Below, one piece after another: positions 12,701 through 43,313 of a DNA stretch of 64,000 nt (position 1 is the first letter of the stretch; every line of letters begins with the position of its first letter). Position numbers and translations under genes: made by a program. The notes under the pieces were generated by a model. The model was given only the letters and a program-made list of their open reading frames with translations. It searched no databases and had not been told where the DNA came from. Origin of the DNA: Obrimoposthia wandeli. Lineage: Eukaryota. The stretch is taken from assembly GCA_977020255.1 (NCBI GenBank), contig CDROCS010000253.1:2976001-3040000 (forward strand). Reading direction: 5' to 3'.

Positions 12701-15700
12701 TCAGAAACCACTCAGCAAACTAATTTATCTAGTCAAGCTCATACACGATCAACGGTCGTTACTGGAGTACAAGTGAAGAAAGTTACTAATACCGCTATTG
12801 CAAATAAGCAAAGCAAAAGGCAAGTACCTGCAGGTGTTAAACATCAAGCAAGTAAAGAAATTTTCCAAGAAACAGCCACGCATCAAGCTTTTTTAAATAC
12901 TCGCCAAATGGCAGGTCAGCAGATTTCTAAATTGATTGAAATGCAAGCTAATGTCAGTGCAGGGTTGCCGACTTATGTTTCAACATCAACATCAAGCGCA
13001 GTTGAGCCGTTAAATGAACGTGCTCATGCACCTGAGCTTTCGGTTGTCTCTTCAAATGTACACGCAGCGAATGAAAGCTGGGCAAATGAATCAGGCTTTA
13101 AAATAAAAGGCCCAGCAGGATACAGCTACCCACCATTACAACTTGAAGAGCGCTTTAATAAACCCGAAGAGATTATTTGGGATACTGCTGATTTAGTTGA
13201 ATTTGCTGAAGGTGATATCGCGAAAGTGTTTGGTGATGAGTTTAAAATCATCGACAGTTATTCACGTCGTGTACGTTTACCGACCACAGATTATTTATTA
13301 GTTTCACGTGTTACCGAACTTGAAGCTACGGTAAATGAATATAAAAAATCATACATGTGCACTGAGTATGATATTCCCGTTGATGCGCCGTTCCTTATCG
13401 ATGGTCAAATTCCTTGGTCAGTATCGGTTGAATCAGGACAATGTGATTTATTATTAATTTCTTATATTGGTATTGATTTTCAAGCCAAAGGCGAACGTGT
13501 TTATCGTTTACTTGATTGTGAATTAACCTTCTTAGAAGAAATGGCCTTTGGTGGTGAAACACTGCGTTATGAAATTCATATCGACTCATATGCACGAAAC
13601 GGCGAGCAATTATTATTCTTCTTTCACTACGATTGTTATGTTGGTGATAAAAAAGTATTAATCATGCGTAATGGTTGTGCGGGTTTCTTCACTGATGAAG
13701 AACTTGCTGATGGCAAAGGCGTAATCTTAAATGATAAAGATAAAGCGGAATTAGCTAATGCAGTTAAAAGTGACTTCACGCCATTAATTACTAATGTAGA
13801 TGCCGCTAAACAAGCCAAACAGCATTTCGATTACGTTGACATGATGAAACTGGTTGATGGCGATGTAGCGGGTTGTTTTGGTGAAGAATATAACCAACAA
13901 GGTCGTAATCCGTCATTAAAGTTCTCGTCTAAGAAATTCTTAATGATAGAGCGCATTACTAAGATTGATGCAAAAGGCGGTCATTGGGGCTTAGGCTTGT
14001 TAGAAGGTCAAAAAGACTTAGACCCGCAGCATTGGTATTTCCCATGTCACTTTAAAGGTGACCAAGTGATGGCCGGCTCATTAATGAGTGAAGGTTGTGG
14101 TCAAATGGCGATGTTCTTAATGCTTAAATTAGGCATGCACGCTAATGTAAATAACGCACGTTTCCAGCCTATGCCAGGTGAGTCTCAAACCGTACGTTGT
14201 CGTGGCCAAGTATTGCCACAACACAATACGTTAACGTATCGTATGGAAGTAACCGCAATGGGCATGGAACCTTACCCATTCTTAAAAGCGAATATCGAAA
14301 TTATTCTTGATGGTAAAGCAGTTGTTGATTTTAAAAACTTATCAGTGATGATCACCGAGCAAGATGATAATTCTCCGTACCCGGTAACATTGCCTGATAA
14401 CGTTAAACTTGTTCAGGGAATAACTGAGCAAGTACCTAAGAATGAAGTATCAGAGTTAGAAGGTGAATTAGATGAGCGAGGTATTGCGCCATTTAAACAT
14501 GCACATCGCCCATTAATGAAAGTTGTGTCTGATTTATCTGCGCCAAAAGAGAAGGGCGTAACACCAATTCAACATTTTGAAGCGCCAATGGTCGTTGGTC
14601 AAAATCGTGTACCTAACCAAGCGCCGTTTACACCGTGGCATATGTTTGAATTTGCTACCGGTAATATCTCTAAATGTTTTGGTCCTGATTTTGACGTGTA
14701 TAAAGGTCGTATTCCTCCACGTACGCCATGTGGTGATTTACAAGTCGTGACGCAAGTTGTCGAAGTGCAAGGTGAGCGTTTAGATCTTAAAAAGACTTCT
14801 AGCTGTATCGCAGAATACTATGTGCCAAGTGATGCATGGTACTTCACAAAAAATAGTGTGAATAACTGGATGCCTTATTCACTCATCATGGAAATTGCCT
14901 TACAACCTAATGGCTTTATTTCGGGTTACATGGGCACCACGCTTAAATACCCAGAAAAAGATCTATTTTTCCGCAATCTTGATGGCAGCGGTGACTTAAT
15001 TAAACAGGTAGATTTACGTGATAAAACTATTGTTAATAAGTCGGTATTATTAAGCACTACCATGGCTGGCGGTATGATAGTACAAAGCTTCACTTTTGAG
15101 CTGTATGTTAAAAATGAAAGTGCTGCTGTGTCATTAGATAGTCATGACCTAGCTCAGCATGAACAGTTCTACAAAGGTACGGCCGTGTTTGGTTACTTTG
15201 GTGCAGATGCGTTAACTAACCAATTAGGTATCGATAACGGTAAAGTAACTCACCCTTGGTTTGTTGATAACAATACACCTAAGTCAGACATTAAGGTGAT
15301 CGATCTTAGTAATTCAAATCTGCCTCTATACCAAGCGCCATTGAACAAACCGCATTATAAATTAGCGGGTGGTCAAATGAACTTTATTGATACCGTTTCT
15401 ATTGTTGAAGGCGGCGGTAAAGCGGGTATTGCTTATGTACATGGTGAACGTACTATTGATGCGACAGATTGGTTCTTCCGTTATCACTTCCACCAAGACC
15501 CAGTAATGCCTGGCTCATTGGGTGTTGAAGCGGTTATCGAATTAATGCAAACCTATGCTTTAGAAAATGATTTAGGTAAGCAATTCACTAATCCAAGATT
15601 TATCGCACCAGCAACTTTGGTTAAATGGAAATATCGTGGTCAAATCACGCCGTTAAACAAACAAATGTCATTAGATGTGCATATTACGGATATCGTCAAA

Positions 15701-15817
15701 ACCGCCGGAGCTGACGGGAAAGGTGAAGTGAGATTAGTTGGCGATGCTAACTTATCGAAAGATGGGCTAAGAATCTACGAAGTGAAAGATATTGTCCTAT
15801 CGCTTGTTGAAGCCTAA
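9758..15817 (+). CDS. pfaC: PUFA synthase PfaC (KS, chain-length factor, FabA-like DH domains)
   Basis: KS DAACASS, HATGT, KSNLGH; DH motifs CHFKGDQVMAG and YHFHQDPVMPG. Confidence 0.96.
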   Translation: MENIAVVGIANLFPGSSAPEEFWQQLLKKQDCRSKATKEQMGVDPEKYTGKKGDTDKFYCVHGGYIRDFNFDAISFIQNTAGLTAPLSEEYLNQLDDLNKWALYVTQQALTDAGYWGSDKLEQCGVILGNLSFPTKSSNHLFMPLYHQVVDNALKAGIDKDFQLSHFSDTDIASNNIHADNALVAGYPAALLAKAAGLGGTHFALDAACASSCYSVKLACDYLHTGKADMMLAGAVSGSDPMFVNMGFSIFQAYPANNIHAPFDKNSQGLFAGEGAGMMVLKRHSDAVRDGDKIHAIIKGGALSNDGKGEFVLSPNTKGQVLVYERAYEDAAVDPRDVDYIECHATGTPKGDNVELGSMDTFFSRFPRENGNKPLLGSVKSNLGHLLTAAGMPGMTKAIWALNEAKIPATINLNEPLSSKKGYLGGAQMPTDTIDWPVPLKKANTANKPRTAGVSVFGFGGSNAHLVLQQPTQQLEPITVKAKKREPLAIIGMDAHFGGAEDLASFKTLIETNGNTFRELPTNRWKGINHDTDVMNALQLNKAPQGGYVENFDIDFLRFKVPPNEQDCLIPQQLMMMKVADNAAKDAGLKEGSNVAVLVAMGIELELHQYRGRVNLSTQIEESLLQQGVTLNTEQRETLTNIAKDGVAHAAQLNQYTSFIGNIMASRISALWDFTGPAITLSAEENSVYRCVELAENLFQTSDIDAVIIASVDLAGSVENITLRQHFGPVNKGPVEKGPVSTNSATSENVLEQNTWKVGEGAGAFVVKPLSKVIQVAEQSIYATIDGVSFANGKDAAAITKAAIASLNIAGLNSADITSVEAHASGFSAENTAEAQALPALYAGKAISSVKSNIGHTFNASGVASIIKTALVLNEDRSTSHIAVNGLGKDESCAHLILSSSKLAHQAAPAPTGKQRPKLIKNISLGGKAIFADIIANVKAPAMAAIKQAFTKQPLRQVKQTVNVMNIKPKLSEVKVSETKLSETTQQTNLSSQAHTRSTVVTGVQVKKVTNTAIANKQSKRQVPAGVKHQASKEIFQETATHQAFLNTRQMAGQQISKLIEMQANVSAGLPTYVSTSTSSAVEPLNERAHAPELSVVSSNVHAANESWANESGFKIKGPAGYSYPPLQLEERFNKPEEIIWDTADLVEFAEGDIAKVFGDEFKIIDSYSRRVRLPTTDYLLVSRVTELEATVNEYKKSYMCTEYDIPVDAPFLIDGQIPWSVSVESGQCDLLLISYIGIDFQAKGERVYRLLDCELTFLEEMAFGGETLRYEIHIDSYARNGEQLLFFFHYDCYVGDKKVLIMRNGCAGFFTDEELADGKGVILNDKDKAELANAVKSDFTPLITNVDAAKQAKQHFDYVDMMKLVDGDVAGCFGEEYNQQGRNPSLKFSSKKFLMIERITKIDAKGGHWGLGLLEGQKDLDPQHWYFPCHFKGDQVMAGSLMSEGCGQMAMFLMLKLGMHANVNNARFQPMPGESQTVRCRGQVLPQHNTLTYRMEVTAMGMEPYPFLKANIEIILDGKAVVDFKNLSVMITEQDDNSPYPVTLPDNVKLVQGITEQVPKNEVSELEGELDERGIAPFKHAHRPLMKVVSDLSAPKEKGVTPIQHFEAPMVVGQNRVPNQAPFTPWHMFEFATGNISKCFGPDFDVYKGRIPPRTPCGDLQVVTQVVEVQGERLDLKKTSSCIAEYYVPSDAWYFTKNSVNNWMPYSLIMEIALQPNGFISGYMGTTLKYPEKDLFFRNLDGSGDLIKQVDLRDKTIVNKSVLLSTTMAGGMIVQSFTFELYVKNESAAVSLDSHDLAQHEQFYKGTAVFGYFGADALTNQLGIDNGKVTHPWFVDNNTPKSDIKVIDLSNSNLPLYQAPLNKPHYKLAGGQMNFIDTVSIVEGGGKAGIAYVHGERTIDATDWFFRYHFHQDPVMPGSLGVEAVIELMQTYALENDLGKQFTNPRFIAPATLVKWKYRGQITPLNKQMSLDVHITDIVKTAGADGKGEVRLVGDANLSKDGLRIYEVKDIVLSLVEA

Positions 15818-16020
15818 CTAACAGCTAACCTCATTGCCATTTGGCACTGTTGCAGCATCAGAAATACTCATTGGTACTTACCTTAAGATAAGCCAATTCC
15901 ATGTTTCTTCTTTGCAACGTACCAACTGGCTTCGAGCTTAACTATTAGGATTAACACCATTACTTAGTCAGTCAAATAGATCTTAAAAAATAAGAACAAG
16001 TAAGATAAATAGGAACAAAG

Positions 16021-17619
16021 ATGTCAAATTTAAGTTATAGCAATGCCAATCCAATTGATTGGGCATGGAAAGTTAATAGCAGCGCTGTTAAAGGCAACGA
16101 TGTAGAAATAAAGTCAGCGTTAATGGACTTAACAAAGCCGGTTTATGTCGCAAAATCTGCTAATGGTTTTGGTGTGGTAAACACTACCGCAGCTACGGGT
16201 GATACGGATGTAGTCGCTTTTGCTCAAAAGCTTACTCCACAAGATTTAGGTGATGATGCTTTTAAAAAGCAGCATGGCGTTAAATACGCTTATCATGGCG
16301 GCGCTATGGCTAATGGTATTGCCTCAGTTGAGCTCGTTGTCGCTTTAGGCAAAGCCGGTTTTTTATGTTCATTCGGCGCAGCAGGTTTAGTACCTGATGC
16401 GGTGGAAGATGCGATTAAACGTATTCAAGCAGAATTACCAAACGGACCTTATGCGGTAAATTTAATACATGCACCAGCGGAAGAAGCATTAGAGCGTGGC
16501 GCCGTTGAGCGCTTTTTAAAGCTTGGCGTTAAAACAGTAGAAGCTTCAGCTTATTTAGGGTTAACCGAACATATCGTTTGGTATCGTTTAGCGGGTTTAT
16601 CTAAAAATAGCGATGGCAGCGTAAATATCGGTAATAAAGTTATTGCAAAGGTATCGCGAACTGAAGTTGGTCGTCGCTTTATGGAGCCTGCGCCGCAAAA
16701 ACTAATTGATAAGCTACTGGCTCAAGGTAAAGTCACCCAAGAGCAAGCTGAGCTGTCAAAGCTTGTACCTATGGCTGATGATATAACCGCTGAAGCAGAC
16801 TCTGGTGGCCATACCGATAATCGTCCTTTCTTAACCTTACTACCAACGATTATAGCGCTTCGTGATGAAGTTCAAGCACAATACAACTTCTCTCCAGCGC
16901 TACGTGTTGGCGCTGGTGGTGGTATTGGTACCCCTGAAGCGGCATTAGCTGCCTTTAATATGGGCTCAGCTTATATTGTTTTAGGCTCGGTAAACCAAGC
17001 CTGTGTTGAAGCGGGCGCTTCTGAATACACACGTAAGTTATTAGCCAGCGTTGAAATGGCTGATGTCACTATGGCACCAGCGGCAGATATGTTTGAAATG
17101 GGCGTGAAGTTGCAAGTAGTTAAGCGTGGTTCAATGTTCGCCATGCGAGCGAAGAAGCTTTACGAGCTATACATTAACTATGACTCCATTGAAGCTATTC
17201 CGGCTGATGAACGTCTTAAGATTGAAAAGCAGATATTTCGCTCTAATCTTGATGATGTTTGGGCAGGTACTGAAGCCTTTTTCACTGAACGTGATCCTGA
17301 AATGTTAGCGCGAGCACAATCTAGCCCTAAACGTAAAATGGCGCTAATTTTCCGTTGGTATTTAGGATTAAGCTCTCGCTGGTCAAATACTGGCGAAAAA
17401 GGCCGTGAAATGGATTACCAAATTTGGGCAGGTCCAAGTTTAGGTGCTTTTAATAGCTGGGTAAAAGGCACGTATTTAGAAGACTATACTCGCCGTTATG
17501 CAGTAGATGTAGCCTTGCATATGTTAAAAGGTGCTGCCTACTTACAACGAGTTAATCAGCTAAAACTACAAGGTGTTAGCTTAAGCACTAAGTTGGCTGG
17601 CTATCGTAGCGAAGACTAG
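16021..17619 (+). CDS. pfaD: PUFA synthase enoyl reductase PfaD
   Basis: GGAMANGIAS, EADSGGHTD, YQIWAGP motifs; position after pfaC. Confidence 0.96.
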   Translation: MSNLSYSNANPIDWAWKVNSSAVKGNDVEIKSALMDLTKPVYVAKSANGFGVVNTTAATGDTDVVAFAQKLTPQDLGDDAFKKQHGVKYAYHGGAMANGIASVELVVALGKAGFLCSFGAAGLVPDAVEDAIKRIQAELPNGPYAVNLIHAPAEEALERGAVERFLKLGVKTVEASAYLGLTEHIVWYRLAGLSKNSDGSVNIGNKVIAKVSRTEVGRRFMEPAPQKLIDKLLAQGKVTQEQAELSKLVPMADDITAEADSGGHTDNRPFLTLLPTIIALRDEVQAQYNFSPALRVGAGGGIGTPEAALAAFNMGSAYIVLGSVNQACVEAGASEYTRKLLASVEMADVTMAPAADMFEMGVKLQVVKRGSMFAMRAKKLYELYINYDSIEAIPADERLKIEKQIFRSNLDDVWAGTEAFFTERDPEMLARAQSSPKRKMALIFRWYLGLSSRWSNTGEKGREMDYQIWAGPSLGAFNSWVKGTYLEDYTRRYAVDVALHMLKGAAYLQRVNQLKLQGVSLSTKLAGYRSED

Positions 17620-19313: not shown

Positions 19314-19408
19314 TACCAACGCCCTAAGAGTGGGCAAATAATTGTAGCTAAAGCTGGGGAATGAAAACAGTAAACTGTTTTTTGTCATGTTTGATTGGAG
19401 AGTTTTAC
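19314..19408 (-). repeat. Degenerate attC
   Basis: taccaac gccct aagagtgggcaaa...tttgtcatgtttga...gtt matches the array attC pattern with substitutions. Confidence 0.6.
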
Positions 19409-19444: not shown

Positions 19445-19536
19445 ATATAACGCCTTGCGAAACGGAAAATGATAATTAGCTACTACCGTGAAGCGATGGC
19501 TAACTGTTATTTTTCCGTTTACGCAATTTGTTATGT
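19445..19536 (-). repeat. attC
   Basis: ATATAAC...cggaaaat...ttagct/ggctaa...atttttccg...GTTATGT. Confidence 0.85.
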
Positions 19537-21511: not shown

Positions 21512-21610
21512 ACATAACATGATTAATTAGCGCGCTAAACAACCGTTGGCTAAAATGCTGAAGAACGAAAACAGCCAACTGATTTTGTCTTATTAATTAG
21601 TTTGTTATAT
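21512..21610 (-). repeat. attC, partly degenerate
   Basis: ACATAAC...gttggctaaaat...cagccaact...GTTATAT. Confidence 0.8.
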
Positions 21611-22543: not shown

Positions 22544-23590
22544 TTAACACTTAGACATGAGAAGTAATGTTAACTCTCTTGCCGATATCTCTTTACACCC
22601 AGAGCTATTTTGCCCACACCATAAGGGTGAAAAATCATCTGAATCTAGTTTTTCTGTGTGACCACGCAATTGTGTTATTTCAATTGAAGCATAAGGAAAT
22701 GCAGGCGCAAGCGAACTTATATAGCCTAACTCTTTCATTGCACGGTTTACGATTCCACGAGCAGGGCGACCTGAGAATATATTGGTAAGTGCTGTATGCT
22801 CAGATTTAGCACTCTTTATTGCAGAACGGTGTAGTCTAGACGTTTTTGCCTCCGAACACAGTAAATAGGCCGTGCCAATTTGTACTGCACTAGCACCAAG
22901 CGCTAAAGCTGTTTGCACATCTTGATTATCACTAATACCACCGGCAGCAATAACGGGAACGTTTACCTTATTGACTATTTGAGTAACGAGGGAAGACATC
23001 CTTATTTGAGTAGATATATCATCTGACAAAAACATACCTCTATGCCCACCAGCTTCTAAACCTTGCGCAACTATTCCATCGACACCATTGGACTCTAACC
23101 ACATTGCCTCTGTAACTGTTGTGGCAGAAGAAACGACTTTTGTTCCCCACTGTTTTATACGTGCAAGCAATTCTTTATTGGGCAGACCAAAATGAAAACT
23201 AATAAACTCAGGTTTAAATGGCTCAATAGCATCAGCAATATCATGATTGAATGGCATTCTACTTGCGCTATTGGTGCGGCTTTCTATTTTTACATCTAAC
23301 TCAGCAAAGTATGGTTTTAATTTTTCTTGCCATATCAATTGCCTATTTTCATCATAAGAGGGCATTTCATGGCAGAAAAAATTAAGATTATAAGGTTTAC
23401 TGGTAGCTTCTTTAATTAATCTAATTTCACTGGTTATCTGCTCAATACTGAGCATTCCACAAGGTAAAGAGCCTAAACCTCCAGCCTTACAGACCGCAAT
23501 AGCCAAAGCACTATCTTGAACGCCCGCCATGGGAGACTGAATAATAGGAAGTTCAGTCTCAAACAAATATTTCACATTTTTTTTGTACAT
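22544..23590 (-). CDS. Nitronate monooxygenase family flavin oxidoreductase
   Basis: PIIQSPMAG, QGLEAGGHRG, PVIAAGGI, VQIGTAYL. Confidence 0.9.
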   Translation of the reverse strand: MYKKNVKYLFETELPIIQSPMAGVQDSALAIAVCKAGGLGSLPCGMLSIEQITSEIRLIKEATSKPYNLNFFCHEMPSYDENRQLIWQEKLKPYFAELDVKIESRTNSASRMPFNHDIADAIEPFKPEFISFHFGLPNKELLARIKQWGTKVVSSATTVTEAMWLESNGVDGIVAQGLEAGGHRGMFLSDDISTQIRMSSLVTQIVNKVNVPVIAAGGISDNQDVQTALALGASAVQIGTAYLLCSEAKTSRLHRSAIKSAKSEHTALTNIFSGRPARGIVNRAMKELGYISSLAPAFPYASIEITQLRGHTEKLDSDDFSPLWCGQNSSGCKEISARELTLLLMSKC

Positions 23591-24121: not shown

Positions 24122-25213
24122 TTACTTAGATTCTAATAATTCACGTAATGATGTTGGTAATATATTTCGAGCTTTACTTGTAATACTTTGTTCATGTTTT
24201 TGCCAAAGAATACCTAGATAAATAACAAATAATCCAAGCAGCGTTAATGTGATGGGGAATAGCCAACTGTCTTTAAATAAATCGGATGCGAGATGACCAA
24301 TATAACCAGTACAGCCTATAGCGCCGAAAACAACAAAAACTCTTCGAACAAGTAATACACCAAAAGCGATCATGAGTAGATTTATACTGAAGTAAATAAA
24401 TTTAGATAATTCACTATCAGAATATTGAAAGGACATTCCACCCCAAAAAGCGACTACACCAAATAAATAGATCCAAAATGCATAATCAGCGTTGTTCCAA
24501 GATCTAATATCAAGCCAAAAGGCCAACGAAATCATGAGTAATCCGCTGTACATAGACACTAATGTTCTCAGCTCCCAATTATATTCGTCGGCAGAAATCA
24601 TTACTGCAATGTCCATTGTTAAATACCAGAGCGTCACAGCAATGGGCATTATTAAGAATGGATATTTGTATTTCCAAGCGATAATAACTCCTACGGCTAA
24701 AGTACTTAGCTCCATATATAACCAATGCCATTTGATATATCGATGGTAATCTCGGTAAACACTTTCATCAGGCCAAACGCCTAAAGCCTGTTGTGCTCCA
24801 TAAACAGCTAATGGCGTTAGAGCAATAACAAATGTTCCACATATTCCTGCAGGTATAGCTAAACCCTTAGCTTTAAATATATTGGTTAGTTTAAGCCCTA
24901 CAGCGCCATAAAATAATGCAATAAAAACAATCCCGACACCACCAAAAGACTCCCATCCTAAATTCATAAAAATAGTCATTGCACCTATCGCAATCATACC
25001 TCCCAAATAATAAAGAACATGAGTGAAATCAAACTTAGGCCCTGCATTGGGCTGAGTTTTAAAAAAGTGAATGAGTTTCTCAGACTGTTCAAAGGAAATA
25101 ATATTCTGCTTTACCGCATCTTCAATGTTCTTTTTAGTAAAGTTCAACCTAGACTCCTTTTTATGATGTGTGGCGAAATGAAACGCAGACGACTGTTGCG
25201 TGTTCTTATCCAT
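24122..25213 (-). CDS. Multi-TM membrane protein (DUF2157-like)
   Basis: N-terminal IIS-EQ and LYYLGGMIAIGA followed by many TM helices. Confidence 0.7.
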   Translation of the reverse strand: MDKNTQQSSAFHFATHHKKESRLNFTKKNIEDAVKQNIISFEQSEKLIHFFKTQPNAGPKFDFTHVLYYLGGMIAIGAMTIFMNLGWESFGGVGIVFIALFYGAVGLKLTNIFKAKGLAIPAGICGTFVIALTPLAVYGAQQALGVWPDESVYRDYHRYIKWHWLYMELSTLAVGVIIAWKYKYPFLIMPIAVTLWYLTMDIAVMISADEYNWELRTLVSMYSGLLMISLAFWLDIRSWNNADYAFWIYLFGVVAFWGGMSFQYSDSELSKFIYFSINLLMIAFGVLLVRRVFVVFGAIGCTGYIGHLASDLFKDSWLFPITLTLLGLFVIYLGILWQKHEQSITSKARNILPTSLRELLESK

Positions 25214-26651: not shown

Positions 26652-26984
26652 TTATATGCCATAGTTAGCATCTACAAGCTCACCCAGTGTAAACTCTGAA
26701 ACGATATTTTGGTCTTTCAACCAATTAGAGATACTTGATATATCAGACTCAGTGACTGAACCATAACGTTCATGAGAAGAAATAAACCCTGCAAATGAAG
26801 CCAGATCCCCACCACCGCCAATACACAAGTTTAGCGTGTCGACATAAGTAAAAAAGTCATCCATAATTGTTGCTAATTCAGACTCCTCCTTACAAGTTAA
26901 ATTACAATCTAATTCAACTCCCATTACAGCAAATTCATCTAAATAAAGCTTTTTTCTTAATCTACGAGATTTTCGAGCGTGCAT
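26652..26984 (-). CDS. yggL: YggL (DUF469) family protein
   Basis: SRRLRKKLYLDEF motif; stop abuts GTTATAT R'' box; start taken at MHARK. Confidence 0.8.
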   Translation of the reverse strand: MHARKSRRLRKKLYLDEFAVMGVELDCNLTCKEESELATIMDDFFTYVDTLNLCIGGGGDLASFAGFISSHERYGSVTESDISSISNWLKDQNIVSEFTLGELVDANYGI

Positions 26985-26993
26985 AATTTTTCC

Positions 26994-27060
26994 TTGGCTA
27001 AAATATTGAGGGACGAAAACAGCCAATTGAGTTTTGTCCTGCTTTAAAAGCTTGTATGGA
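26994..27060 (-). repeat. Truncated attC
   Basis: ttggctaaaatattgagggacgaaaacagccaa...ttttgtcc...agcttgt; R'-L' arm missing. Confidence 0.7.
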
Positions 27061-27874: not shown

Positions 27875-28078
27875 AAAAATTCCTTAGCCTTTATTAGATG
27901 TGGGGTAATGTCACAACATGCCGTTTACTATAAAATGCGCGGTCAAGCTGTTAGCAGATCAAGTCCCGTTTTAAATTCTTGTTGAACGAAGCCGCTCTGC
28001 GGCAGAGTAGATTTAAAACAACCTTCCATACTCAATAACAGCATTGTCACTTCGATGATGCGTTATTGGAGTATACCC

Positions 28079-28966
28079 ATGAATACATCACAAGCACAAC
28101 ATTACAATTATCTTTATGAACAACACCTTATCAACCTATCCTTACAAGGTAAACGTCCTTCAACAATTGATGCTTACGCCCGTGCGGTTCGCCGTATAAC
28201 TGCCTTTTTTGATAAAGCACCTGATACCTTAACCACCGCTGACTTAAAACAATATTTCAACAGCCTCATTCAAACACATTCTTGGAGCACCATTAAGCTT
28301 GACCGTAATGGTTTACAGTTCTTTTACCGCTACACTCTCGATAAACAATGGGAGTGGCTCTCTATCGTTAAACCACCACAAGTAAAGCGCATCCCTGATA
28401 TTTTAACGGTCAAGCAAGTCAGTGATGTGATCAATCAAACCAAGCAACTTCGCTATCAAGTATTTTTTATAACGCTTTATTCTCTGGGACTGCGCTTAAG
28501 TGAAGGACTTAATTTAACCATACATGATATCGATAAATCGACAATGCTGGTACATGTTCGTGATGGTAAAGGAGGAAAAGACCGCATGGTGCCTCTGCCT
28601 GAGCAGACTCTGTTAGCGCTGAGGAATTATTGGAAAATACATCGCCACGCCCGTTTGATTTTTCCTGGCCTTCAGGTAAATACGAAAAACCATATGGATA
28701 AAGGCGGTGTTCAAAAAGCCTTAAAAAAGGTACTGCATGATTGTCGAATTAAAAAATTCATCAGCCCACATTCTCTTCGTCATTGTTATGCTACCCACCT
28801 GCTTGAACAAGGGCTTGATTTGCGTTCTTTGCAGCAATTACTTGGACACGCCAGTCTCAACACCACTGCACGTTACACACAGCTCACAAAAGTGAAACAA
28901 CGTGATATGTCACGCGCTGTAAACAAATTAACCGATAAACTCGACATTATATGGTCTATAAAATGA
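28079..28966 (+). CDS. Tyrosine recombinase (phage integrase family, N-terminal SAM-like domain), intact
   Basis: LGLRLSE (R), GKGGKDR (K), HSLRH, LGH, TARY catalytic set; no IntI-specific insertion. Confidence 0.93.
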   Translation: MNTSQAQHYNYLYEQHLINLSLQGKRPSTIDAYARAVRRITAFFDKAPDTLTTADLKQYFNSLIQTHSWSTIKLDRNGLQFFYRYTLDKQWEWLSIVKPPQVKRIPDILTVKQVSDVINQTKQLRYQVFFITLYSLGLRLSEGLNLTIHDIDKSTMLVHVRDGKGGKDRMVPLPEQTLLALRNYWKIHRHARLIFPGLQVNTKNHMDKGGVQKALKKVLHDCRIKKFISPHSLRHCYATHLLEQGLDLRSLQQLLGHASLNTTARYTQLTKVKQRDMSRAVNKLTDKLDIIWSIK

Positions 28967-30028
28967 GTACCTTTATTGAGTTACTTCGTCAACATCACCA
29001 AGCCCTTGAAATTCAGTATAGCGTGAAATTAACACCTGACATGCGTAAAGCGATTTATGCCATGCTTATGTGCAAAACACCACAGCAACGCCAATCACTT
29101 TGGGCTTGTGACCATTGCGAGCATCATGACCGTATGCCACTTTCTTGTGGCCATAGAAACTGCCCGCAGTGCCAACAAAACACAACATCACAATGGCTCG
29201 CTAGACAAAAAGCAAAACGCTTACCTGTTGAGTATTTCATGGCGACTTTTACCTTACCCTTTGAGTTAAGGCCTTTAGCTAAAAGCCGTCCTAAAGCATT
29301 ATATCAATTGATGTTTTCAGTCACATCTTCAATATTGAAAGACTTTGCCACACGCCAAGGCTTAGGCGACATTGGCTTTACCTCGGTACTACATACCCAC
29401 AGCAGAAGGCGTGAACTACATCCCCATTTACATATTATTGTGCCAAATGGCGGTTACGACTCTAAACGAAAACAATGGCGTAAAGGCAAGAAAGGCTATT
29501 TGTTTAACGAGTTCGCACTCGCTAAAGTCTGGAGAGCACGCGTGTTTGAAGCTATAAAAAAACATCCTGAGCTGTCACTGACTACTATCAAAAAACTGCC
29601 AACAAAATGGGTGGTCGATTGCAAAAAAATAGGTCATGGCTTACCGGCGTTAAAATATCTGTCTCGGTATTTATATCGTGGGGTATTGCCCGATAAAGAC
29701 ATTATTCATTATGACCAACACAACGTCACCTTTCGTTATAAAGACAGTGCAAATTCCAAACAAAAATAACACCCCCGTACGTTGCCAACACTCAAATTCT
29801 ACGCTGATACTGCAACATGTTTTGCCCAAAGGCTTGCAGCGGGTACGTGATTATGGGCTGTTATCCTCAGGCGCTAAAAAGCTTAGGTTAATAATTCAAT
29901 TGCTGTTATTACCCATTCACGACTGGCTTAAACCCAAAAAGGAAGAAACCACACCCACGCGGGCCACGAGAATATGCCCTTGCTGCAAGCATAAAATGCA
30001 TTGCACGGGAGTGACACGAACGCCCTAG
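28963..30028 (+). pseudogene. IS91-family HUH/Y2 transposase, frameshifted near 29755-29805
   Basis: CDHC/SCGHRNCPQC zinc finger, HPHLH, YLSRY; split into two ORFs relative to copy 2. Confidence 0.85.
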
Positions 30029-30244
30029 CCGAAAGGCGAATACAATAAGGATAATGGCTAAGGTAAGTAATTAATCTAGGGGGGAATAAAGAAAGGCAAC
30101 ATGGTTCGCTAAAACATAAACTGATGAAAAAGCATTGCCTTTTTGTCTAATCTCGTGTAATGTCTTAAGATTATCTGGCAATTGATAGCAAAGCCCCTTC
30201 AAGAAAGAAATCGCTATTTCCTATATAAAGCAGACATCGGGCTT

Positions 30245-30301
30245 GTCCAACACCCGAATAAGGTGTTTAGCCGCCGTTAGCCTATTCTTGGTTTGTTATG
30301 T
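30245..30301 (+). other. attC-like terminal hairpin carried by element copy 1
   Basis: GTCCAAC accc gaataagg...cctattc ttggttt GTT. Confidence 0.6.
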
Positions 30302-30542
30302 GCTTCTGGATTTATTGACCAAATACATGATTAGCTGACGCTAAAGGTTAACAAATCTATAAACCTGAAACAACCACAACCCGCCTAACTATCGCACCAA
30401 CTTTAATTTGAGCCAATGAATGAAAAACTAATAGATTTTTACTCAATACCAATGGCGAAAACTGGAAGGCAACAAATACAAATTTGATGATACACGCCTT
30501 ACTTTTAGCAAAAATCACCTAAGGAAGAAGGCGGCACATAAC
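30296..30542. other. Non-coding cassette, family A (copy 1)
   Basis: Complementary ends GTTATGTGC/GCACATAAC, no ORF of 60 aa or more, TTTGAGCC...GGCGAAAACTG motif. Confidence 0.75.
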
Positions 30543-30611
30543 CTTGGGTAAAAGTTGCTAAGGGCACGTTTGGAACAAACTGTACGTGTCAAATTATTGC
30601 CGTTGTTATGT
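30536..30611 (-). repeat. Degenerate, shortened attC
   Basis: ACATAAC...aaactgtacgtgtc...GTTATGT. Confidence 0.55.
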
Positions 30612-30639
30612 TACCACCACTGAAATTAAGGAAATATAT

Positions 30640-30864
30640 ATGAATGAATTTGATGAAGTATTACCAGTATTAACAAGTGACCAAGTTTTTGTTTGTGAAG
30701 ACGGTTGCGGGGATTGTAGAGCTATTGAGTTTGATTTTTGTTACAGCCGGTCTGAAAATACAAATACTGGAGAAGTTACAGAACTCACGCATAAAGCTTA
30801 CAAGTCTAGCTGTTGCGGTGCAAAAGTTAACGTTTGGGATGAGTCGATAGAAGACTTGGTTTAG
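30640..30864 (+). CDS. 74-aa Cys-rich protein, antisense to the array inside a cassette
   Basis: RBS AAGGA; CEDGCGDC...SSCCG; cassette ends GTTATGTTA/TAACATAAC. Confidence 0.7.
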   Translation: MNEFDEVLPVLTSDQVFVCEDGCGDCRAIEFDFCYSRSENTNTGEVTELTHKAYKSSCCGAKVNVWDESIEDLV

Positions 30865-30866
30865 TA

Positions 30867-30967
30867 ACATAACGCCCCATTAAGAGGCAAATAATTGTTG
30901 GCTAAAATAAGCGACGAAGGAGCAAATAGCCAACTGTTATTTGTCCTGCTTGAATGGCTTGTTATAT
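30867..30967 (-). repeat. attC
   Basis: ACATAAC gcccc attaagaggcaaa...gttggct...agccaact...tttgtcctgcttgaat ggctt GTTATAT. Confidence 0.92.
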
Positions 30968-30969
30968 TT

Positions 30970-31544
30970 TTATTTAAACCGGGAAGGATCAATTAATTTG
31001 ATTTCTGTCATTCGGTTGAAAATTTTTGAATACTTGTGCCATTCATCAGTTGGACTACCAGCAACAGTAATTCCGACAGAGTCTTTTTCATTATCCCAGA
31101 GCAGTGAATGTAAAATTGTGAAATTTATTGGAATACCATTCCTCATTTGCACTTGTGTCACTTCTATACATGTGCGAATAAAGTCCCCAATTCTATTTGT
31201 ACCACAACGTTTGATTAGAGCTGATGTTTTTATTATGTGTTCAATATATCCTTGAACATACTCTTCCGGCGTTAACTCTGTCCCCTTATATATCCCCATC
31301 ATAAATTGAATAGATAAACCTGTTTCATATCCATTAATTGGATCTTCTTTAGATATTATCCAATTTAGAGAATTAGCAGCCTTGTGCCTTTCCGCATAAA
31401 ACCAACTTTTGGGTTTTGGAACTTCGCCACCAGTAGGTTCTAAAATCTGTTTTACAAATTCGACTGGCTGGTTTTTTGTATTATTTTCTGTAGACGCGCA
31501 TGAATGACCAAACTAAATAAGTACATTAGTAAAAATATTTTCAT
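30970..31544 (-). pseudogene. Putative lipoprotein, one frameshift near the lipobox
   Basis: MKIFLLMYLFSLVI, then a shifted frame SCASTENN that runs in frame into ORF 30970-31302. Confidence 0.6.
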
Positions 31545-31575
31545 AATTTTAATTGACTCAATAGATAATTTAAAA

Positions 31576-31667
31576 ATATAACGCCTTGCTAAGGGGAAAA
31601 TTATGGTTGGCTATAATGCGCGAAGCGCAGCCAACTGTAATTTTTCCGTTTGAGCAACTTGTTATAT
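31576..31667 (-). repeat. attC
   Basis: ATATAAC...GTTATAT with gttggct/agccaac arms. Confidence 0.92.
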
Positions 31668-31895
31668 GCAACGCTGGTAAAACCAAGCTTTGCACGAATT
31701 TAAGAAGCCCGTAATATATAACCTAACCGTGAACTTTTACGCTACACGCGAAAGGTTGAACAAAATTAATAGCGTTGCCACCTTTGAAAAAGGTAAAAGA
31801 GGCAATGCTTATTAATGCTGACGCGAACCAGTTTTAGCGAAAAACTATTAACTAGAAAGCACTTTATTTAAAGCTAATTTTTAATAGCATATAAC
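31662..31895. other. Non-coding cassette, family B (copy 1)
   Basis: Bounded by GTTATATGC/GCATATAAC; 102-bp core identical to 38924-39025. Confidence 0.8.
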
Positions 31896-31985
31896 GCCCC
31901 AATAAGAGGCTAAAAATTGTTGGCTAAAATAGCGAGGCACGAGCACGGCCAACTGTTTTTAGTCCTTTTGATTGCCTTGTTAGTT
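31889..31985 (-). repeat. attC
   Basis: ATATAAC...GTTAGTT. Confidence 0.92.
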
Positions 31986-32276
31986 GCTTTGGACTTGGGG
32001 TGCCACAACAGAAGCTAATAAGTTACCATGCGTTTACTTTACAGTTTGACTCAAAAAGCATCTCCGCACTACACAATCAAACATGAATTTTGAGCCTTAA
32101 AAACTAAAGCTAATTGAATCATTAAACTGAGTAAGGCGAAAACTGGGGAGGGCAAAAAGGAAGATACTATTTGAAGGCACTTCCATTGCCAAACCAAAGA
32201 TTGAACCAAACGCAAAAAACTAAGTTAAGAACCAAACTAGCAAATAAATTTAACTAATTTAGAGCGGACAACTAAC
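31980..32276. other. Non-coding cassette, family A (copy 2)
   Basis: Ends GTTAGTTG/CAACTAAC; no ORF of 60 aa or more; shared motif. Confidence 0.78.
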
Positions 32277-32370
32277 GCCCTCGTTAATGGGCAAATGATA
32301 GTTGGTTAAAATAAGCGACGCAGGAGCAAAAACCAACTGTAATTTGTCCTGATTTAACAGCTTGTTATAT
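32270..32370 (-). repeat. attC
   Basis: AACTAAC...GTTATAT. Confidence 0.92.
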
Positions 32371-32628
32371 TTATTTATGACTTGCGTCATTAATGTGTTT
32401 TTTTACAGCCTCAACTTGTGCATCACATTGCCTTTTACTGTCACCAGACATCTCAGAGCACTTTTGAGATGAACCTCCGCTATTTGTTGCAGCATCAGTA
32501 GCAGCCGCTAAAGCTAAACAGACAGGCGTCGCTGAGCCACAATTTGCAGCTTTATCGTAGTTTGGGCTCGAGCTGCAACCGCTTAGCACTATAGAAATTA
32601 ATGCAGTGAGTAATTTGATAAATGACAT
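32371..32628 (-). CDS. Small lipoprotein cassette
   Basis: Signal peptide with LSGC lipobox; four further Cys. Confidence 0.75.
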   Translation of the reverse strand: MSFIKLLTALISIVLSGCSSSPNYDKAANCGSATPVCLALAAATDAATNSGGSSQKCSEMSGDSKRQCDAQVEAVKKHINDASHK

Positions 32629-32646
32629 ATCCGTATACACCTATAA

Positions 32647-32745
32647 ATATAACGCCCACATTAACGGGCTAAGTAATAGTTGGCTAAAATAGCGAAGAAT
32701 GAGCACGGCCAACTGTTGCGTGTCACGTTGATTTACTTGTTATAT
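32647..32745 (-). repeat. attC
   Basis: ATATAAC...GTTATAT. Confidence 0.9.
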
Positions 32746-32749
32746 GCAA

Positions 32750-32965
32750 TTAGTTATTACAAGCACAAGCTAGTTTTCCATTACTTTGATGCCACTCTTG
32801 ATAATTACCACTAGAACAATTACGCCTAACATCAGGACAACTTGCACCAACGTAACTAATTTCGGTATCAGTAGCTTTTTCAAACGCTGATTCGGCAATG
32901 GCTCCTACGAGAGAAGAACAACCTGAAAGTAGAACAAGTATAAATGTGACGGGTAGGTATTTCAT
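32750..32965 (-). CDS. Small lipoprotein cassette
   Basis: LLSGC lipobox; C-terminal Cys cluster. Confidence 0.75.
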   Translation of the reverse strand: MKYLPVTFILVLLSGCSSLVGAIAESAFEKATDTEISYVGASCPDVRRNCSSGNYQEWHQSNGKLACACNN

Positions 32966-32979
32966 GCGTGATCCTTATT

Positions 32980-33084
32980 GGCTAACGCCCTGCTTTAAGG
33001 CAAATTCAGGTTGGCTAAATGTGAAGTGGAGCGGAATCCGCCAATCGTAGTTTCGCTGGTCCCAATTTGAACAGCTTGTTGAAC
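32980..33084 (-). repeat. attC whose R'' box is interrupted by IS91-like copy 2
   Basis: GGCTAAC gccct...ttgaacagcttG|TTGAAC. Confidence 0.8.
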
Positions 33085-33171
33085 GCCGCTCTGCGCAGAG
33101 TGATTTAAAATGAATCTCCATACTCAATAACAGCACATTATCACTTCGATGATGCGTTATTGAGTATACCC

Positions 33172-34003
33172 ATGAATACATCACAAGCACAACATTTACA
33201 TAATTATCTTTTATGAACAACACCTTATCAACCTTATCCTTACAAGTAAACGTCCTTCAACAATTGATGTTCTTAACCACCGCTGACTTAAAACAATATT
33301 TTCAACAGCCCTTTTATTCATTATTCTTGAGCACCATTAAGCTTGACCGTAATGGATTGCAGTTCTTTTACCGCTATACACTCAATAAGCAATGGGAATG
33401 GCTCGCTATCGTTAAACCACCGCTGCAAAGCGCATCCCCTGATATTTTAACGGTCAAGCAAGTCACAAGTGAGGTAATTAATCAAACCAAGCAACTGCTA
33501 TCAAGTATTTTTTATAACGCTTATTCTCTGGGACTGCGCTTTAAGTGAAGGGCTTAATTTAACCCTACATGATATTGATAAATCGACAAGCGCGGCATGC
33601 CTCGTGATGAAAGCAGTGAAAAAGACCGCATGGTGCCTCAAGTTGCCTGAGCAGACTCCTGTTAGCGCTGAGGAATTATTGAAAATACACGCCATGCCTG
33701 TTTGATTTTTCCTTACTTTCAGGTAAATACGAAAACCATATGGATAAAGGCAGTGCTCAAAAAGCCTTAAAGGTACTGCATGATTGTCGACCAAAAATCC
33801 AAGCACATTCTTCTTGTCATTGTTATGCTACCCACCTGCTTGAACAAGCGCTTGATTTGCGTTCTTGCGGGTAAATTACTTGGACACGCCAGTTCAACAC
33901 CACTGCATCGTTACACCACAGTCACAAAGTGAAACAACGTGATATGTCACGCGCCGTAAACGACTTAACAGATAAACTCGACATTACATGGACTGTAAAA
34001 TGA
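33172..34003 (+). pseudogene. Tyrosine recombinase with many frameshifts
   Basis: Colinear with 28079-28966 but with numerous indels (possibly assembly error). Confidence 0.8.
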
Positions 34004-35067
34004 GTACCTTTATCGATTTACTACGTCAACATCATCAAGCCCTTGAAACTCAGTATAGCGCTAAATTAACACAAGACATGCGTAAAGCGATTTATGCCAT
34101 GCTTAGGTGCAAAACACCACAGCAACGCCAATCACTTTGGGCTTGTGACCATTGTGAACATCATGACCGTATGCCACTTTCTTGTGGTCATCGAAACTGC
34201 CCACAGTGCCAACAAAACACCACCTCACAATGGCTAGCTAGGCAAAAAGCAAAGCGCTTACCTGTTGAGTATTTCATGGTGACCTTCACCTTACCCTTCT
34301 CTTTTGAGTTAAGGCCTTTAGCTAAAAGCCGTCCTAAAGCATTATATCAATTGATGTTTTCAGTCACATCTTCAATATTGAAAGACTTTGCCACACGCCA
34401 AGGCTTAGGCGACATTGGCTTTACCTCGGTACTACATACCCACAGCAGAAGGCGTGAACTACATCCCCATTTACATATTATTGTGCCAAATGGCGGTTAC
34501 GACTCTAAACGAAAACAATGGCGTAAAGGCAAGAAAGGCTATTTGTTTAACGAGTTCGCACTCGCTAAAGTCTGGAGAGCACGCGTGTTTGAAGCTATAA
34601 AAAAACATCCTGAGCTGTCACTGACTACTATCAAAAAACTGCCAACAAAATGGGTGGTCGATTGCAAAAAAATAGGTCATGGCTTACCGGCGTTAAAATA
34701 TCTGTCTCGGTATTTATATCGTGGGGTATTGCCCGATAAAGACATTATTCATTATGACCAACACAACGTCACCTTTCGTTATAAAGACAGTGCAACGAAC
34801 AAAATAACACCCCGTACGTTGCCAACACTCAAATTCTTAATGCTGATACTGCAACATGTTTTGCCCAAAGGATTGCAGCGGGTACGTGATTATGGGCTGT
34901 TATCCTCAGGCGCTAAAAAGCTTAGGTTAATAATTCAATTGCTGTTATTACCCATTCACGACTGGCTTAAACCCAAAAAGGAAGAAACCACACCCACGCG
35001 GGCCACGAGAATATGCCCTTGCTGCAAGCATAAAATGCATTGCACGGGAGTGACACGAACGCCCTAG
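34000..35067 (+). CDS. IS91-family HUH/Y2 transposase, open frame
   Basis: Zinc finger, HPHLH, YLSRY, RVRDYG, C-terminal CPCC. Confidence 0.92.
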   Translation: MSTFIDLLRQHHQALETQYSAKLTQDMRKAIYAMLRCKTPQQRQSLWACDHCEHHDRMPLSCGHRNCPQCQQNTTSQWLARQKAKRLPVEYFMVTFTLPFSFELRPLAKSRPKALYQLMFSVTSSILKDFATRQGLGDIGFTSVLHTHSRRRELHPHLHIIVPNGGYDSKRKQWRKGKKGYLFNEFALAKVWRARVFEAIKKHPELSLTTIKKLPTKWVVDCKKIGHGLPALKYLSRYLYRGVLPDKDIIHYDQHNVTFRYKDSATNKITPRTLPTLKFLMLILQHVLPKGLQRVRDYGLLSSGAKKLRLIIQLLLLPIHDWLKPKKEETTPTRATRICPCCKHKMHCTGVTRTP

Positions 35068-35277
35068 CCGAAAGGCGAATACAATAAGGATAATGGCTAA
35101 GGTAAGTAATTAATCTAGGGGGGAATAAAGAAAGGCAACATGGTTCGCTAAAACATAAACTGATGAAAAAGCATTGCCTTTTTCGTCTTAACTTCGTACG
35201 TCTTGCGATCTGGCAATTGATAGCAAGCCCTTCAAAAAACAAATCGCTATTTACTATATAAAGCAGACTACGGGCTT

Positions 35278-35332
35278 GTCCAACACCCGAATAAGGTGTC
35301 GGCTACGCGACACCTATTCTTATTTGTTATAA
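35278..35332 (+). other. attC-like terminal hairpin carried by element copy 2
   Basis: GTCCAAC accc GAATA(A)GGTGTCG gctacg CGACACCTATTC ttattt GTTATAA. Confidence 0.65.
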
Positions 35333-35662
35333 GGTATTTTCACCAGGTCGATAATCATAGTTTTTTCGCTCTTCAACCGATATTACATTCTCAACCATTT
35401 TCGATTCGGAAGCACCATACTTTTGGAAGTTTTCTCGACCTTCTATGATAGATAAACCATGATTAGCACCAGAAGGTTCATCTAATTCCCAACCTGTGCC
35501 TTCATCTTCCCAAAAGCAAATTGGACAAATTAAATAGTTTCCGCTTTCAGCAATACTTATGTATTCACAACATTCGCATTTAACTCTAGGTGTAAGATCA
35601 TCAGGAGAATACCAAATAAGCTTACGCTTAAATAAATTGCGGATTATGCTGAACATCGTCAT
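35327..35662 (-). CDS. CPCC-family cysteine-rich protein cassette
   Basis: CECC...ICPICFWED...SGANHGLS-EGRENF. Confidence 0.85.
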   Translation of the reverse strand: MTMFSIIRNLFKRKLIWYSPDDLTPRVKCECCEYISIAESGNYLICPICFWEDEGTGWELDEPSGANHGLSIIEGRENFQKYGASESKMVENVISVEERKNYDYRPGENTL

Positions 35663-35672
35663 ACCTTATAAC

Positions 35673-42408: not shown

Positions 42409-42424
42409 CTGTATGGGTGTACAG
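42409..42424 (+). promoter_or_regulatory. LexA (SOS) box upstream of intI
   Basis: CTGTatgggtgtACAG = CTGT-N8-ACAG, 16 bp before ATG 42441. Confidence 0.85.
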
Positions 42425-42440
42425 TTACCTTGAGGTTTTT

Positions 42441-43200
42441 ATGTCTTCTCCTTTTTTGCAGCACATTACGGAACAAATGCGTTTAAAACGTTATGCTAAA
42501 AGAACGATAGAAAGCTATGTCTATTGGATAAAGGCGTTTATAAACTTTAATGGCCAGCGTCATCCAATAAAATGTCATGATGTGGGAGTTGAAAATTTTC
42601 TTTCTCATTTAACAAACAAACTTAATGTCGCACCTAGAACCCAAGGTGTGGCATTAAATGCTTTAGTCTTCTTGTATAGAGGGATCCTGTTAAAGCCCTT
42701 AACGCTTGAGCTTAACTTCAATAAGTCTAAGCAGGTTACTAAGTTACCTGTCGTGTTAACCCAAGAAGAGGTAATTGCGTTACGTTTAATGGAGGTTGTT
42801 CGCTTAAGAGTACAGGACATTGATTTTGACTTTCATGCTATTCAAGTGTGGCAAGGGAAGGGCGGTAAAAATCGGCGTGTTACCTTAGTAAAGGAGTTGT
42901 GCGAGTCGTTTAAGTGAAGATCCCGAAACAGGTTTTGTTCGTCGACATCATATTGATGAAACAACATTAAGAAAATCAGTGAAAATGGCTGCATGCAATG
43001 CAGAGATAGAAAAAAATGTGACTTGTCATACGTTAAGGCATTCATTTGCCAACATTTATTGCAACGAGGGGCCGATATAAGAACCAGTACGCGAGGGAAC
43101 GAATTAAAGTCATACTGATATTCGTACTACGCAAATATACACTCATGTCATTGAACAGGGTGCGAATGGTGTTCGCAGCCCATTATCAGATTTACTCTAA
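42441..43200 (+). pseudogene. intI: Integron integrase, with internal deletions and frameshifts
   Basis: MRLKRYAKRTIESY-WI, LRLME-LRVQDIDF, GKGGKNR, DPETG-RRHH, CHTLRHSFA, TTQIYTHV, GVRSPL; 760 bp, most of the IntI-specific insertion missing. Confidence 0.9.
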
Positions 43201-43313
43201 AGTAGGCACTTTGAGAATAATAAAACCGCGCGATACAGCGCGATTTTATTTAAAAAAGGGGGTGTAAAGTCGTTAATACAAAGTGTTTAACACCTTGCAT
43301 TAACAAACCTCAA

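Follow-up and report, generated by a model that had tools for sequence, protein, structure and literature searches.

IS91-family elements with an IntI-related recombinase gene recurrently interrupt integron attC sites at the R'' box

We analysed a 64,000-nucleotide stretch of DNA (hereafter the window) from an assembly of Obrimoposthia wandeli (GCA_977020255.1, contig CDROCS010000253.1, positions 2,976,001 to 3,040,000 of the forward strand), in which two copies of a mobile element, A and B, interrupt attC sites of an integron cassette array. The open reading frames (ORFs) of the element encode a tyrosine recombinase and an HUH transposase only; no DEDD transposase, reverse transcriptase or ribozyme is among them. 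Among the relatives of this element, 24 of 29 independent insertions lie in attC sites, all at the R'' box and with a polarity identical to that of the window copies. Our best explanation, to which we give about even chances, is a marine gammaproteobacterial clade of the IS91 family in which the gene of a recombinase related to the integron integrase IntI is translationally coupled to an HUH-Y2 transposase gene, and which inserts at the R'' box of attC in a site- and orientation-specific way by means of a circle. As such it looks like a third kind of integron-site-specific parasite, apparently undescribed so far.

The cassette array lies left of a remnant of an integron integrase gene (intI). 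As this remnant is read on the + strand and the cassette ORFs on the - strand, the top strand of the array is the - strand of the window, and the + strand GTTA box at the right side of each attC is R''; this bears out the array polarity assumed in an earlier, sequence-only reading of the window. An attC covariance model trained on 13 window attCs recognised 19 attCs in the window, with identical polarity in all of them. The features concerned are the following.

27982-30295, + strand: copy A of the element, 2314 bp, with intact recombinase, broken transposase and a degenerate right-end hairpin
27875-27981, no strand assigned: left flank of copy A, the rest of the interrupted attC, ending in ...ttcttG, with an atypical, poorly folding body
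27982-28007, + strand: left end of copy A, consisting of TTGAAC, GAA and a small GC hairpin (GCCGC-TCT-GCGGC)
28055-28966, + strand: tyrosine recombinase of copy A, 303 amino acids, with HxxR, LLGH and Y present and without the IntI-specific insert of about 40 amino acids
28951-30028, + strand: IS91-family HUH-Y2 transposase pseudogene of copy A, read as two ORFs (28951-29769 and 29678-30028)
30245-30295, + strand: right end of copy A, with a GTCCAAC box (30245-30251), the degenerate hairpin and the terminal TTGGTTTG
30295-30304, + strand: R'' box of the cassette interrupted by copy A, GTTATGTGCT, complementary to 30533-30542 (9/10)
33079-35326, + strand: copy B of the element, 2248 bp, with decayed recombinase region, intact transposase and canonical right end
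32980-33078, + strand: body of the attC interrupted by copy B, GGCTAACGCCC...agcttG, of the Colwellia attC family, degenerate
33988-35067, + strand: intact IS91-family transposase of copy B, 359 amino acids, with HUH (HPHLH) and YxxxY motifs
35278-35326, + strand: right end of copy B, with a GTCCAAC box (35278-35284), a 12-bp hairpin with one bulged A (35289-35319) and TTATTTG (35320-35326)
35326-35335, + strand: R'' box of the cassette interrupted by copy B, GTTATAAGGT, complementary to 35663-35672 (10/10)
42417-43300, + strand: integron integrase pseudogene, with a 166-amino-acid N-terminal ORF, an internal deletion, and catalytic motifs and fragments scattered over two other frames
22-17619: pfaABCD genes

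Both copies align over their full length, and their boundaries and junctions are as first read: ...ttcttG|TTGAAC... and ...ggtttG|TTATGTGC at the left and right of copy A, ...agcttG|TTGAAC... and ...tatttG|TTATAAGG at those of copy B. Both elements end in ...tttG and both right flanks begin with TTA. Because the junction decamers are complementary to the starts of the interrupted cassettes (9/10 for copy A, 10/10 for copy B), these right flanks are true R'' boxes, and neither copy has a target duplication, in agreement with the proposed insertion at the G|TT of R''. The stop codon of the cassette ORF at 35327-35662 (- strand) falls within the R'' box next to copy B. Since TTGTT is present at both junctions, the exchange point is ambiguous within 5 nt. 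The left flanks had been taken for the bodies of the resident attCs, which holds for copy B, with its degenerate member of the Colwellia family, but not well for copy A, whose flank is not a well-folding attC body and gave no match to the attC covariance model over 27875-27981.

The transposase gene of copy A has an in-frame stop (29767-29769) downstream of small indels that are absent from the other copies in sequencing runs (Logan contigs), and its right-end hairpin has lost the upper stem, with 30260-30279 diverged. In copy B, the recombinase gene has many indels and one base is missing from the left-end hairpin. The two copies match as a mosaic, with about 100% identity in 29250-30110 and about 83% in the recombinase region, which suggests conversion between them. 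By their gene content the window copies are evidently fossils, A with a working recombinase gene only and B with a working transposase gene only; because each keeps one working gene, they could at best complement each other.

Relatives were collected from one scan of species-representative genomes, twelve exact-protein look-ups, plasmid records and one metagenome pattern scan, as loci found via protein similarity (which favoured long contigs), and the element ends were located by blastn-short. The 29 independent insertions are those with a readable left junction and have a protein identity of 60-97%; several come from one genome (five from Colwellia maritima), each with a different attC and cassette. 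The hosts are Colwellia, Shewanella, Pseudoalteromonas, Photobacterium, Salinivibrio and one E. coli IncC plasmid, and both enzymes are intact in most copies. The 24 insertions in attC are spread over at least four unrelated attC sequence families, including the 60-nt class 1 site, so that the alignment of homologous flanks upholds G|TT targeting of R'' in one orientation. For 16 of them, the covariance-model match ends exactly on the first bases of the element. One is placed by annotation, in attC_aadA1 of a class 1 integron on the E. coli IncC plasmid NZ_LT985243, where the gene order is aadA2, cmlA1, aadA1, element, attC body, qacEdelta1, sul1. One is in a 75-nt site in Salinivibrio (-20.7 kcal/mol) and three are in sites of 125-140 nt on Photobacterium plasmids that resemble Vibrio cholerae repeats (VCR-like). 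The attC body is lost at locus L004, where a 340-nt cassette starts with the complement (10/10) of the right flank. The window copies are the last two. The three VCR-like sites and the attC of copy A were assigned by R-box complementarity and reading of the sequence, without a model match. Further attC-like left flanks occur in Logan contigs of related sequencing runs.

Two other classification procedures were abandoned. A nearest-complement box search for attC set wrong boundaries in situ, the R' belonging to the next cassette, and with a classifier based on constrained-fold energy, attC and control TTGTTR sites could not be told apart (control mean -7.7, minimum -19.8 kcal/mol); the latter was replaced by the covariance model together with the complementarity of R'' to the cassette start. 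By this complementarity, the right-junction decamer is 9-10/10 complementary to the 5' box of the downstream attC in 13 of the 16 loci having one. All strong covariance-model matches are on the sense strand of the element (36 sources searched, about 125 attC matches in total), and the element genes are always antisense to the cassettes. The constant core at the junctions is TTG|TT(A/G) on the bottom strand of the array, that is, the AA|C of R'' on the top strand. The left flank reads NTTG, where N is C at Colwellia-type sites, A at attC_aadA1, T at VCR-like sites and G at L004; read on this side, it differs by its variable first base from the CTTG/GTTC tetranucleotide of IS91. Neither target duplications nor terminal inverted repeats were found in about 29 loci, while subterminal palindromes are present at both ends.

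R'' boxes make up about 8% of the TTGTTR sites even in the array-rich window, and far less genome-wide, compared to 83% of the insertions. Under a generous null of 14%, the binomial probability of 24 out of 29 insertions at R'' is still below 1e-15, and chance is excluded as their cause. It is on this enrichment that plain IS91 rolling-circle transposition, the alternative that survives best, has to be weighed. According to this alternative, the element uses the short target AACAA/TTGTT and the recombinase takes no part in integration; it could be a resolvase, or a regulator or termination factor that stands where IS91 has orf121. The attC bias would then stem from the motif being present in R'' boxes, from attC DNA often being single-stranded and from arrays tolerating insertions. 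TTGTT is indeed found at both junctions with an otherwise variable left flank (C/A/T/G), some insertions are at non-attC TTGTTR sites, and the motif alone accounts for the choice of R'' (cTTGTTA) over R' (gcGTTA) and for the single orientation, though not for the enrichment. For IS91 it is reported that the terminus with the cleavage tetranucleotide lies upstream of tnpA, that the target tetranucleotide is next to the downstream end and that TnpA alone inserts single-stranded circles, and only those of the bottom strand; orf121 occupies the same overlapping position as the recombinase gene here (PMC13181058, 2026). Next to the enrichment, three observations speak against plain IS91 transposition: the targeted attCs come from unrelated sequence families, including the 60-nt class 1 site, most copies have an intact recombinase gene coupled to tnpA, and a GTYCAAC box and the hairpin geometry are more conserved than a nick site would require. 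We regard it as a serious contender, yet a rather doubtful one.

Both proteins are readily classified. The end of the recombinase gene overlaps the start of the transposase gene in both window copies, and the products carry the domains Phage_integrase and SAM_4, and Zn_Tnp_IS91 and Y2_Tnp, respectively. The transposase matches Y2_Tnp and Zn_Tnp_IS91 with Pfam E-values of 2.6e-45 and 1.4e-25, and the NCBIfam model transpos_IS91 with 360 bits against a cutoff of 125. The closest structural relative of the recombinase is XerA (4a8e, 1e-36), followed by VchIntIA, and it scores 161.8 with the NCBIfam model integrase_gron, below the cutoff of 265. Recombinases of IS91 elements have been described as an "integron-like" subgroup comprising the closest homologues of IntI and missing the same insert (bioRxiv 10.1101/542381).

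The element ends are conserved as well. The left end reads TTGAACGAAGCCGC-loop-GCGGC, and its motif, TTGRAC-nAA followed by a GC hairpin, is kept out to elements with the same integrase-IS91 gene pair in Clostridium, Rhizobium and Aromatoleum. The right end consists of GGGCTTGTYCAAC, a 12-bp hairpin with one bulged base, and TTATTTG. Across 17 distinct right ends, 5 of the 12 hairpin pairs are changed on both sides and 89.7% of the cells are paired, compared to 36-49% in slid controls; for four out of five measures of covariation none of 500 shuffles equalled the observed values (one shuffle did for the pair types). The right-end hairpin that both window copies were said to share is thus conserved among relatives by compensatory changes, although its upper stem is gone from copy A. 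In the joined ends, the terminal G plus TTGAAC is the pairing partner of the GTYCAAC box that precedes the hairpin; this pairing is perfect (GTTCAAC/GTTGAAC) in L003, L032, L033 and L037, and in the element annotated ISAzo26 GTCCAAC is combined with TTGGAC, both sides being changed. In all lineages, the joined ends are predicted to fold with an R-like helix on the outside, followed by an asymmetric internal loop and then the 12-bp helix, so that the proposal of an attC-like circle junction is sound as geometry. For the Colwellia type, the outer helix would be 8 bp on the antisense strand versus 5 bp on the sense strand, as G.T replaces C.A.

From these data, the course of insertion that we favour is the following. 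The transposase would copy out the antisense strand as a single-stranded circle, as in IS91; the joined ends of the circle would fold like an attC, with an R-like helix of 8 bp, then an internal loop, then a 12-bp helix bearing one bulged base; the circle strand would be joined to the top strand of the array at the AA|C of R''; and replication would then resolve the joined product. By homology to IS91, the antisense strand of the element would be the transferred strand, and its polarity is that of the array top strand. In sedentary integrons, the top strands of attC sites are on the lagging-strand template and can fold, whereas IntI uses bottom strands only (PMC11023631), so that the element would use the strand that the integron leaves idle. 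In the window, GC skew across the 64 kb tracks gene orientation and the replication direction is therefore not readable from it.

As to which enzyme would perform the strand exchange, the recombinase of the element itself, in a single-strand reaction like that of CTX phage or IntI, comes just short of an even chance in our estimate; the canonical AA|C position, the attC-like fold, the kinship with IntI and the attC enrichment point in this direction. Tentatively, and with somewhat less confidence, the transposase might do so, the recombinase then being an accessory for targeting or termination; this is favoured by the example of IS91, by the insertions outside attC and by the lack of the IntI insert. 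TTGTT at both junctions is compatible with either enzyme, as a motif shared in the manner of IS91 or as the core of a recombinase. A complete two-enzyme pathway, in which a circle made by the HUH enzyme mimics attC and the IntI-like recombinase integrates it by one-strand exchange into attC folds of the top strand, seems to us unlikely as a whole, though worth stating; if true, these two-enzyme elements would be living relatives of the system ancestral to integron integrases and attC recombination.

Beyond the points that favour the transposase, several observations weigh against our best explanation. TTGTT at both junctions needs no recombinase, because the IS91 transposase alone inserts a circle and a motif common to target and end is an IS91 signature. 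The conserved NTTG is on the upstream side of the genes, unlike the downstream end of IS91; at the other edge of the 5-nt ambiguity, the same data would equally agree with AACAA next to the downstream end, on the antisense strand. Aligned to VchIntIA (2a3v), the recombinase has 17 residues in the place of 57, and the helices with which IntI recognises extrahelical bases are absent. Lineages differ in the hairpin arm that carries the bulged base. Distant integrase-IS91 relatives, in Clostridium, Rhizobium and Aromatoleum, are all outside integrons, for which reason attC targeting seems to be a speciality of the marine gammaproteobacterial clade. The Logan contigs searched showed no circle, nick or recombination product. 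Finally, five of the 29 insertions (L003, L037, L048, L050, L053) are at non-attC or unclear sites, so that a folded attC is not obligatory and the motif is kept. The sequence-only reading had named insertion of homologs at non-attC sites, or at CTTG/GTTC regardless of attC, as contrary evidence. The former was found in part, L003 interrupting an IS66-type transposase gene at gcttG|TTGtgc and L053 being at ttattG|TTAtat outside any array, both TTGTTR, and L037 and L048 probably being further cases; as read on the upstream side, the flank is NTTG instead of CTTG/GTTC.

The recombinase gene is frameshift-split and the transposase gene intact in two loci, L003 (5091-6010) and L004 (5071-6007), of which only L003 is outside attC. 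The idea that a broken recombinase leads to non-attC sites was discarded, since L004 is at a true R'' (10/10) despite its frameshift and L037, L048 and L053 have intact recombinase genes.

A further possibility is that the recombinase alone moves a double-stranded circle with TTGTT as core, the IS91 transposase being a passenger or relic. A 5-bp core repeated unchanged at both junctions is what site-specific recombination classically leaves behind, and the catalytic residues of the recombinase are intact, but so is the transposase (HUH, YxxxY), which is kept alongside the recombinase from Clostridia to Proteobacteria; moreover, the core is flanked not by inverted binding arms but by subterminal hairpins typical of HUH substrates, and no empty or excised sites were seen. 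We therefore hold this to be improbable. Still more remote is an ordinary or odd gene cassette with its joined ends as attC, moved by the host integron integrase, since, even if joining of the ends places canonical core boxes (GTCCAAC ... G|TTGAAC) on either side of a hairpin that follows the genes and IntI can use secondary GTT sites, IntI would insert at R' or attI in cassette orientation while 24 out of 24 insertions are at R'' and inverted, the intI of the window is a pseudogene, relatives are found outside integrons and the element has two DNA enzymes of its own.

In the same vein, the sequence-only reading had proposed that the element repairs the attC it breaks with a functional substitute and becomes excisable as a cassette, and for neither did we find support beyond geometry. 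After insertion, the array top strand reads gene, R'' (with its last C from the element), right-end hairpin and GTTGGAC, and at the other end GTTCAAC plus the resident attC body. These hybrid sites are simply the reciprocal-exchange product of two hairpins at AA|C, and signs that IntI uses either of them were not found. No solo right end starting at the predicted R' boundary, the footprint of IntI resolution, was found among the loci, those at L028 (2700-2827) and L038 (3001-3250) being truncated copies. Nor did the predicted circles turn up: the Logan contigs of four runs hold no circle joints or back-joints, only alternative attC-like left flanks, and the joined-end pattern has no match in viral contigs. 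Its sole match in the metagenome collection, and the only head-to-tail junction, is L042 (OJFP01002730.1, reverse strand 704-3310), a metagenome contig in which a 307-bp tail is joined directly to a full copy (…TTATTTG|TTGAAC…). Here the right junction, where TTTG|TTA is recreated behind the hairpin, could have been targeted again, or the arrangement could be a product of rolling-circle read-through.

Individual relatives give further information on the spread of the element. The relative on the E. coli plasmid (L032, NZ_LT985243.1 10952-13287) has 63% identity, both genes intact, and a right end that shares 95% identity with a truncated tail on a plasmid of Shewanella sp. ANA-3, which points to an origin in Shewanella. 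It is absent from 5,426 complete E. coli genomes, and the ANA-3 tail is its one further occurrence among plasmids. On a Photobacterium toruni plasmid, a 404-bp internal-deletion derivative (L036, 1938-2341), consisting of the left end, about 110 recombinase codons and the right end, is located in a canonical attC 1.6 kb from a full copy, which suggests mobilisation in trans. The copy in Shewanella denitrificans OS217 (L043) is in an attC as well.

The pair of recombinase and tnpA genes with the left-end motif is also found on plasmids of Aromatoleum (ISAzo26), Rhizobium and Clostridium. On Clostridium estertheticum plasmids (L040, L054, L055, L056), the conserved left end begins with TTGAACTAAACCGC and is preceded by AATGTCGTGAAA and a copy-specific 6-9 nt, with the reverse complement of AATGTCGTGAAA at the right flank. 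This represents either 12-bp terminal repeats around a variable insert or insertion into a hairpin-forming repeat; an empty copy of the flank palindrome was not present in the loci retrieved.

Other genes were noted close to the elements. On the Photobacterium damselae plasmid pPHDD1 (L035), a group II intron reverse-transcriptase gene (1682-3154) in cassette orientation is located 850 nt left of the element, beside the same VCR-like attC. IS110-family transposase genes (DEDD_Tnp_IS110 / Transposase_20) are present in element-bearing arrays at L015 (7101-7475), L021 (2348-3136) and L043 (6139-6891), possibly as neighbours of the IS1111-attC type.

Concerning the surroundings of copies A and B, the closest copies of the element are those of Colwellia hornerae and its relatives, and the window DNA appears to be Colwellia-like. 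The array is probably immobile by its own integrase, as intI is a pseudogene. Far left of the main array, the attC model has matches at 19314-19408, 19445-19536, 21512-21610 and 26959-27060, which flank a FabK-like gene (22544-23590) and a 363-amino-acid ORF (24122-25213) on both sides. Judged by these matches, the array, or a cluster of attC sites lacking an integrase (CALIN), seems to extend to the pfa cluster.

If confirmed, a third kind of attC specialist, combining a rolling-circle transposase with the closest known relatives of IntI, would add a new parasite to those of integrons. Its insertion parts a cassette gene from its attC, which should block excision by IntI, and brings outward-facing DNA into arrays. 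It has already reached a clinical-type class 1 integron (aadA2-cmlA1-aadA1-[element]-qacEdelta1 on the E. coli IncC plasmid). Moreover, it offers a tractable system to study the origin of single-strand recombination of the attC type, as well as the role of the recombinase in the "integrase" subgroup of IS91, the purpose of which has, to our knowledge, been a standing question since those elements were catalogued. Our full-text literature search, with most subscription journals, ISfinder and TnPedia outside its scope, returned no description of attC targeting by IS91-family elements or of the G|TT point of R'', and an earlier report is conceivable. The nearest prior work, a survey of Shewanella integrons, reports no insertion sequences interrupting attC sites.

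Compared to known systems, the element shares with the IS91 family (IS91, IS801, IS1294) the HUH-Y2 enzyme with zinc-binding N-terminus, subterminal hairpins, the lack of inverted-repeat termini and of duplications, a short motif common to the target and one end, and an upstream ORF overlapping the start of tnpA. Unlike in these elements, the upstream ORF encodes a tyrosine recombinase of 295-303 amino acids instead of orf121, the conserved flank, as read on the upstream side, is NTTG|TT and not CTTG/GTTC at the downstream end, and insertions cluster in attC. Those IS91 members that carry an additional "phage integrase" ORF, such as ISAzo26 on an Aromatoleum plasmid, have the same gene pair and left-end motif; ISSde12, ISShvi3 and ISSod25 are also IS91 members with an extra integrase ORF.

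An integron gene cassette inserts at the G|TT of R' or attI, in array orientation, with one attC downstream of a promoterless gene, in contrast to the attC insertions found here, which are all at R'' and antisense. With IntI/attC recombination, the element has in common a folded single strand, R-box pairing, an internal loop, a bulged base, crossover at AA|C / G|TT and an Xer/IntI-like recombinase, all of this as predicted from sequence; it differs in that its recombinase lacks the IntI insert and that the array strand would be the top strand at R'' and not the bottom strand at R'. A division of labour comparable to the two-enzyme pathway is known from CTX phage, in which an HUH protein makes the single strand and a tyrosine recombinase (XerCD) integrates it.

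As attC-specific mobile elements, that is, recurrent ones at one position and polarity in unrelated attCs, among which the present element can be counted, we know of only two kinds, IS1111-attC and group IIC-attC introns. The IS1111-attC group (IS110 family) comprises insertion sequences specialised on attC, orientation-specific and without duplication, which differ from the element in their DEDD transposase, in the attC position used and in chemistry. The target of group IIC-attC introns, too, includes TTGTT. IS1111-attC elements are mentioned in PMC9229058. Group IIC-attC introns insert with bottom-strand polarity, antisense to the cassettes, and part a gene from its attC (PMC3001079); they resemble the element in polarity and in this separation, and differ from it in being retroelements, with a ribozyme and a reverse transcriptase and with neither an HUH enzyme nor a recombinase.

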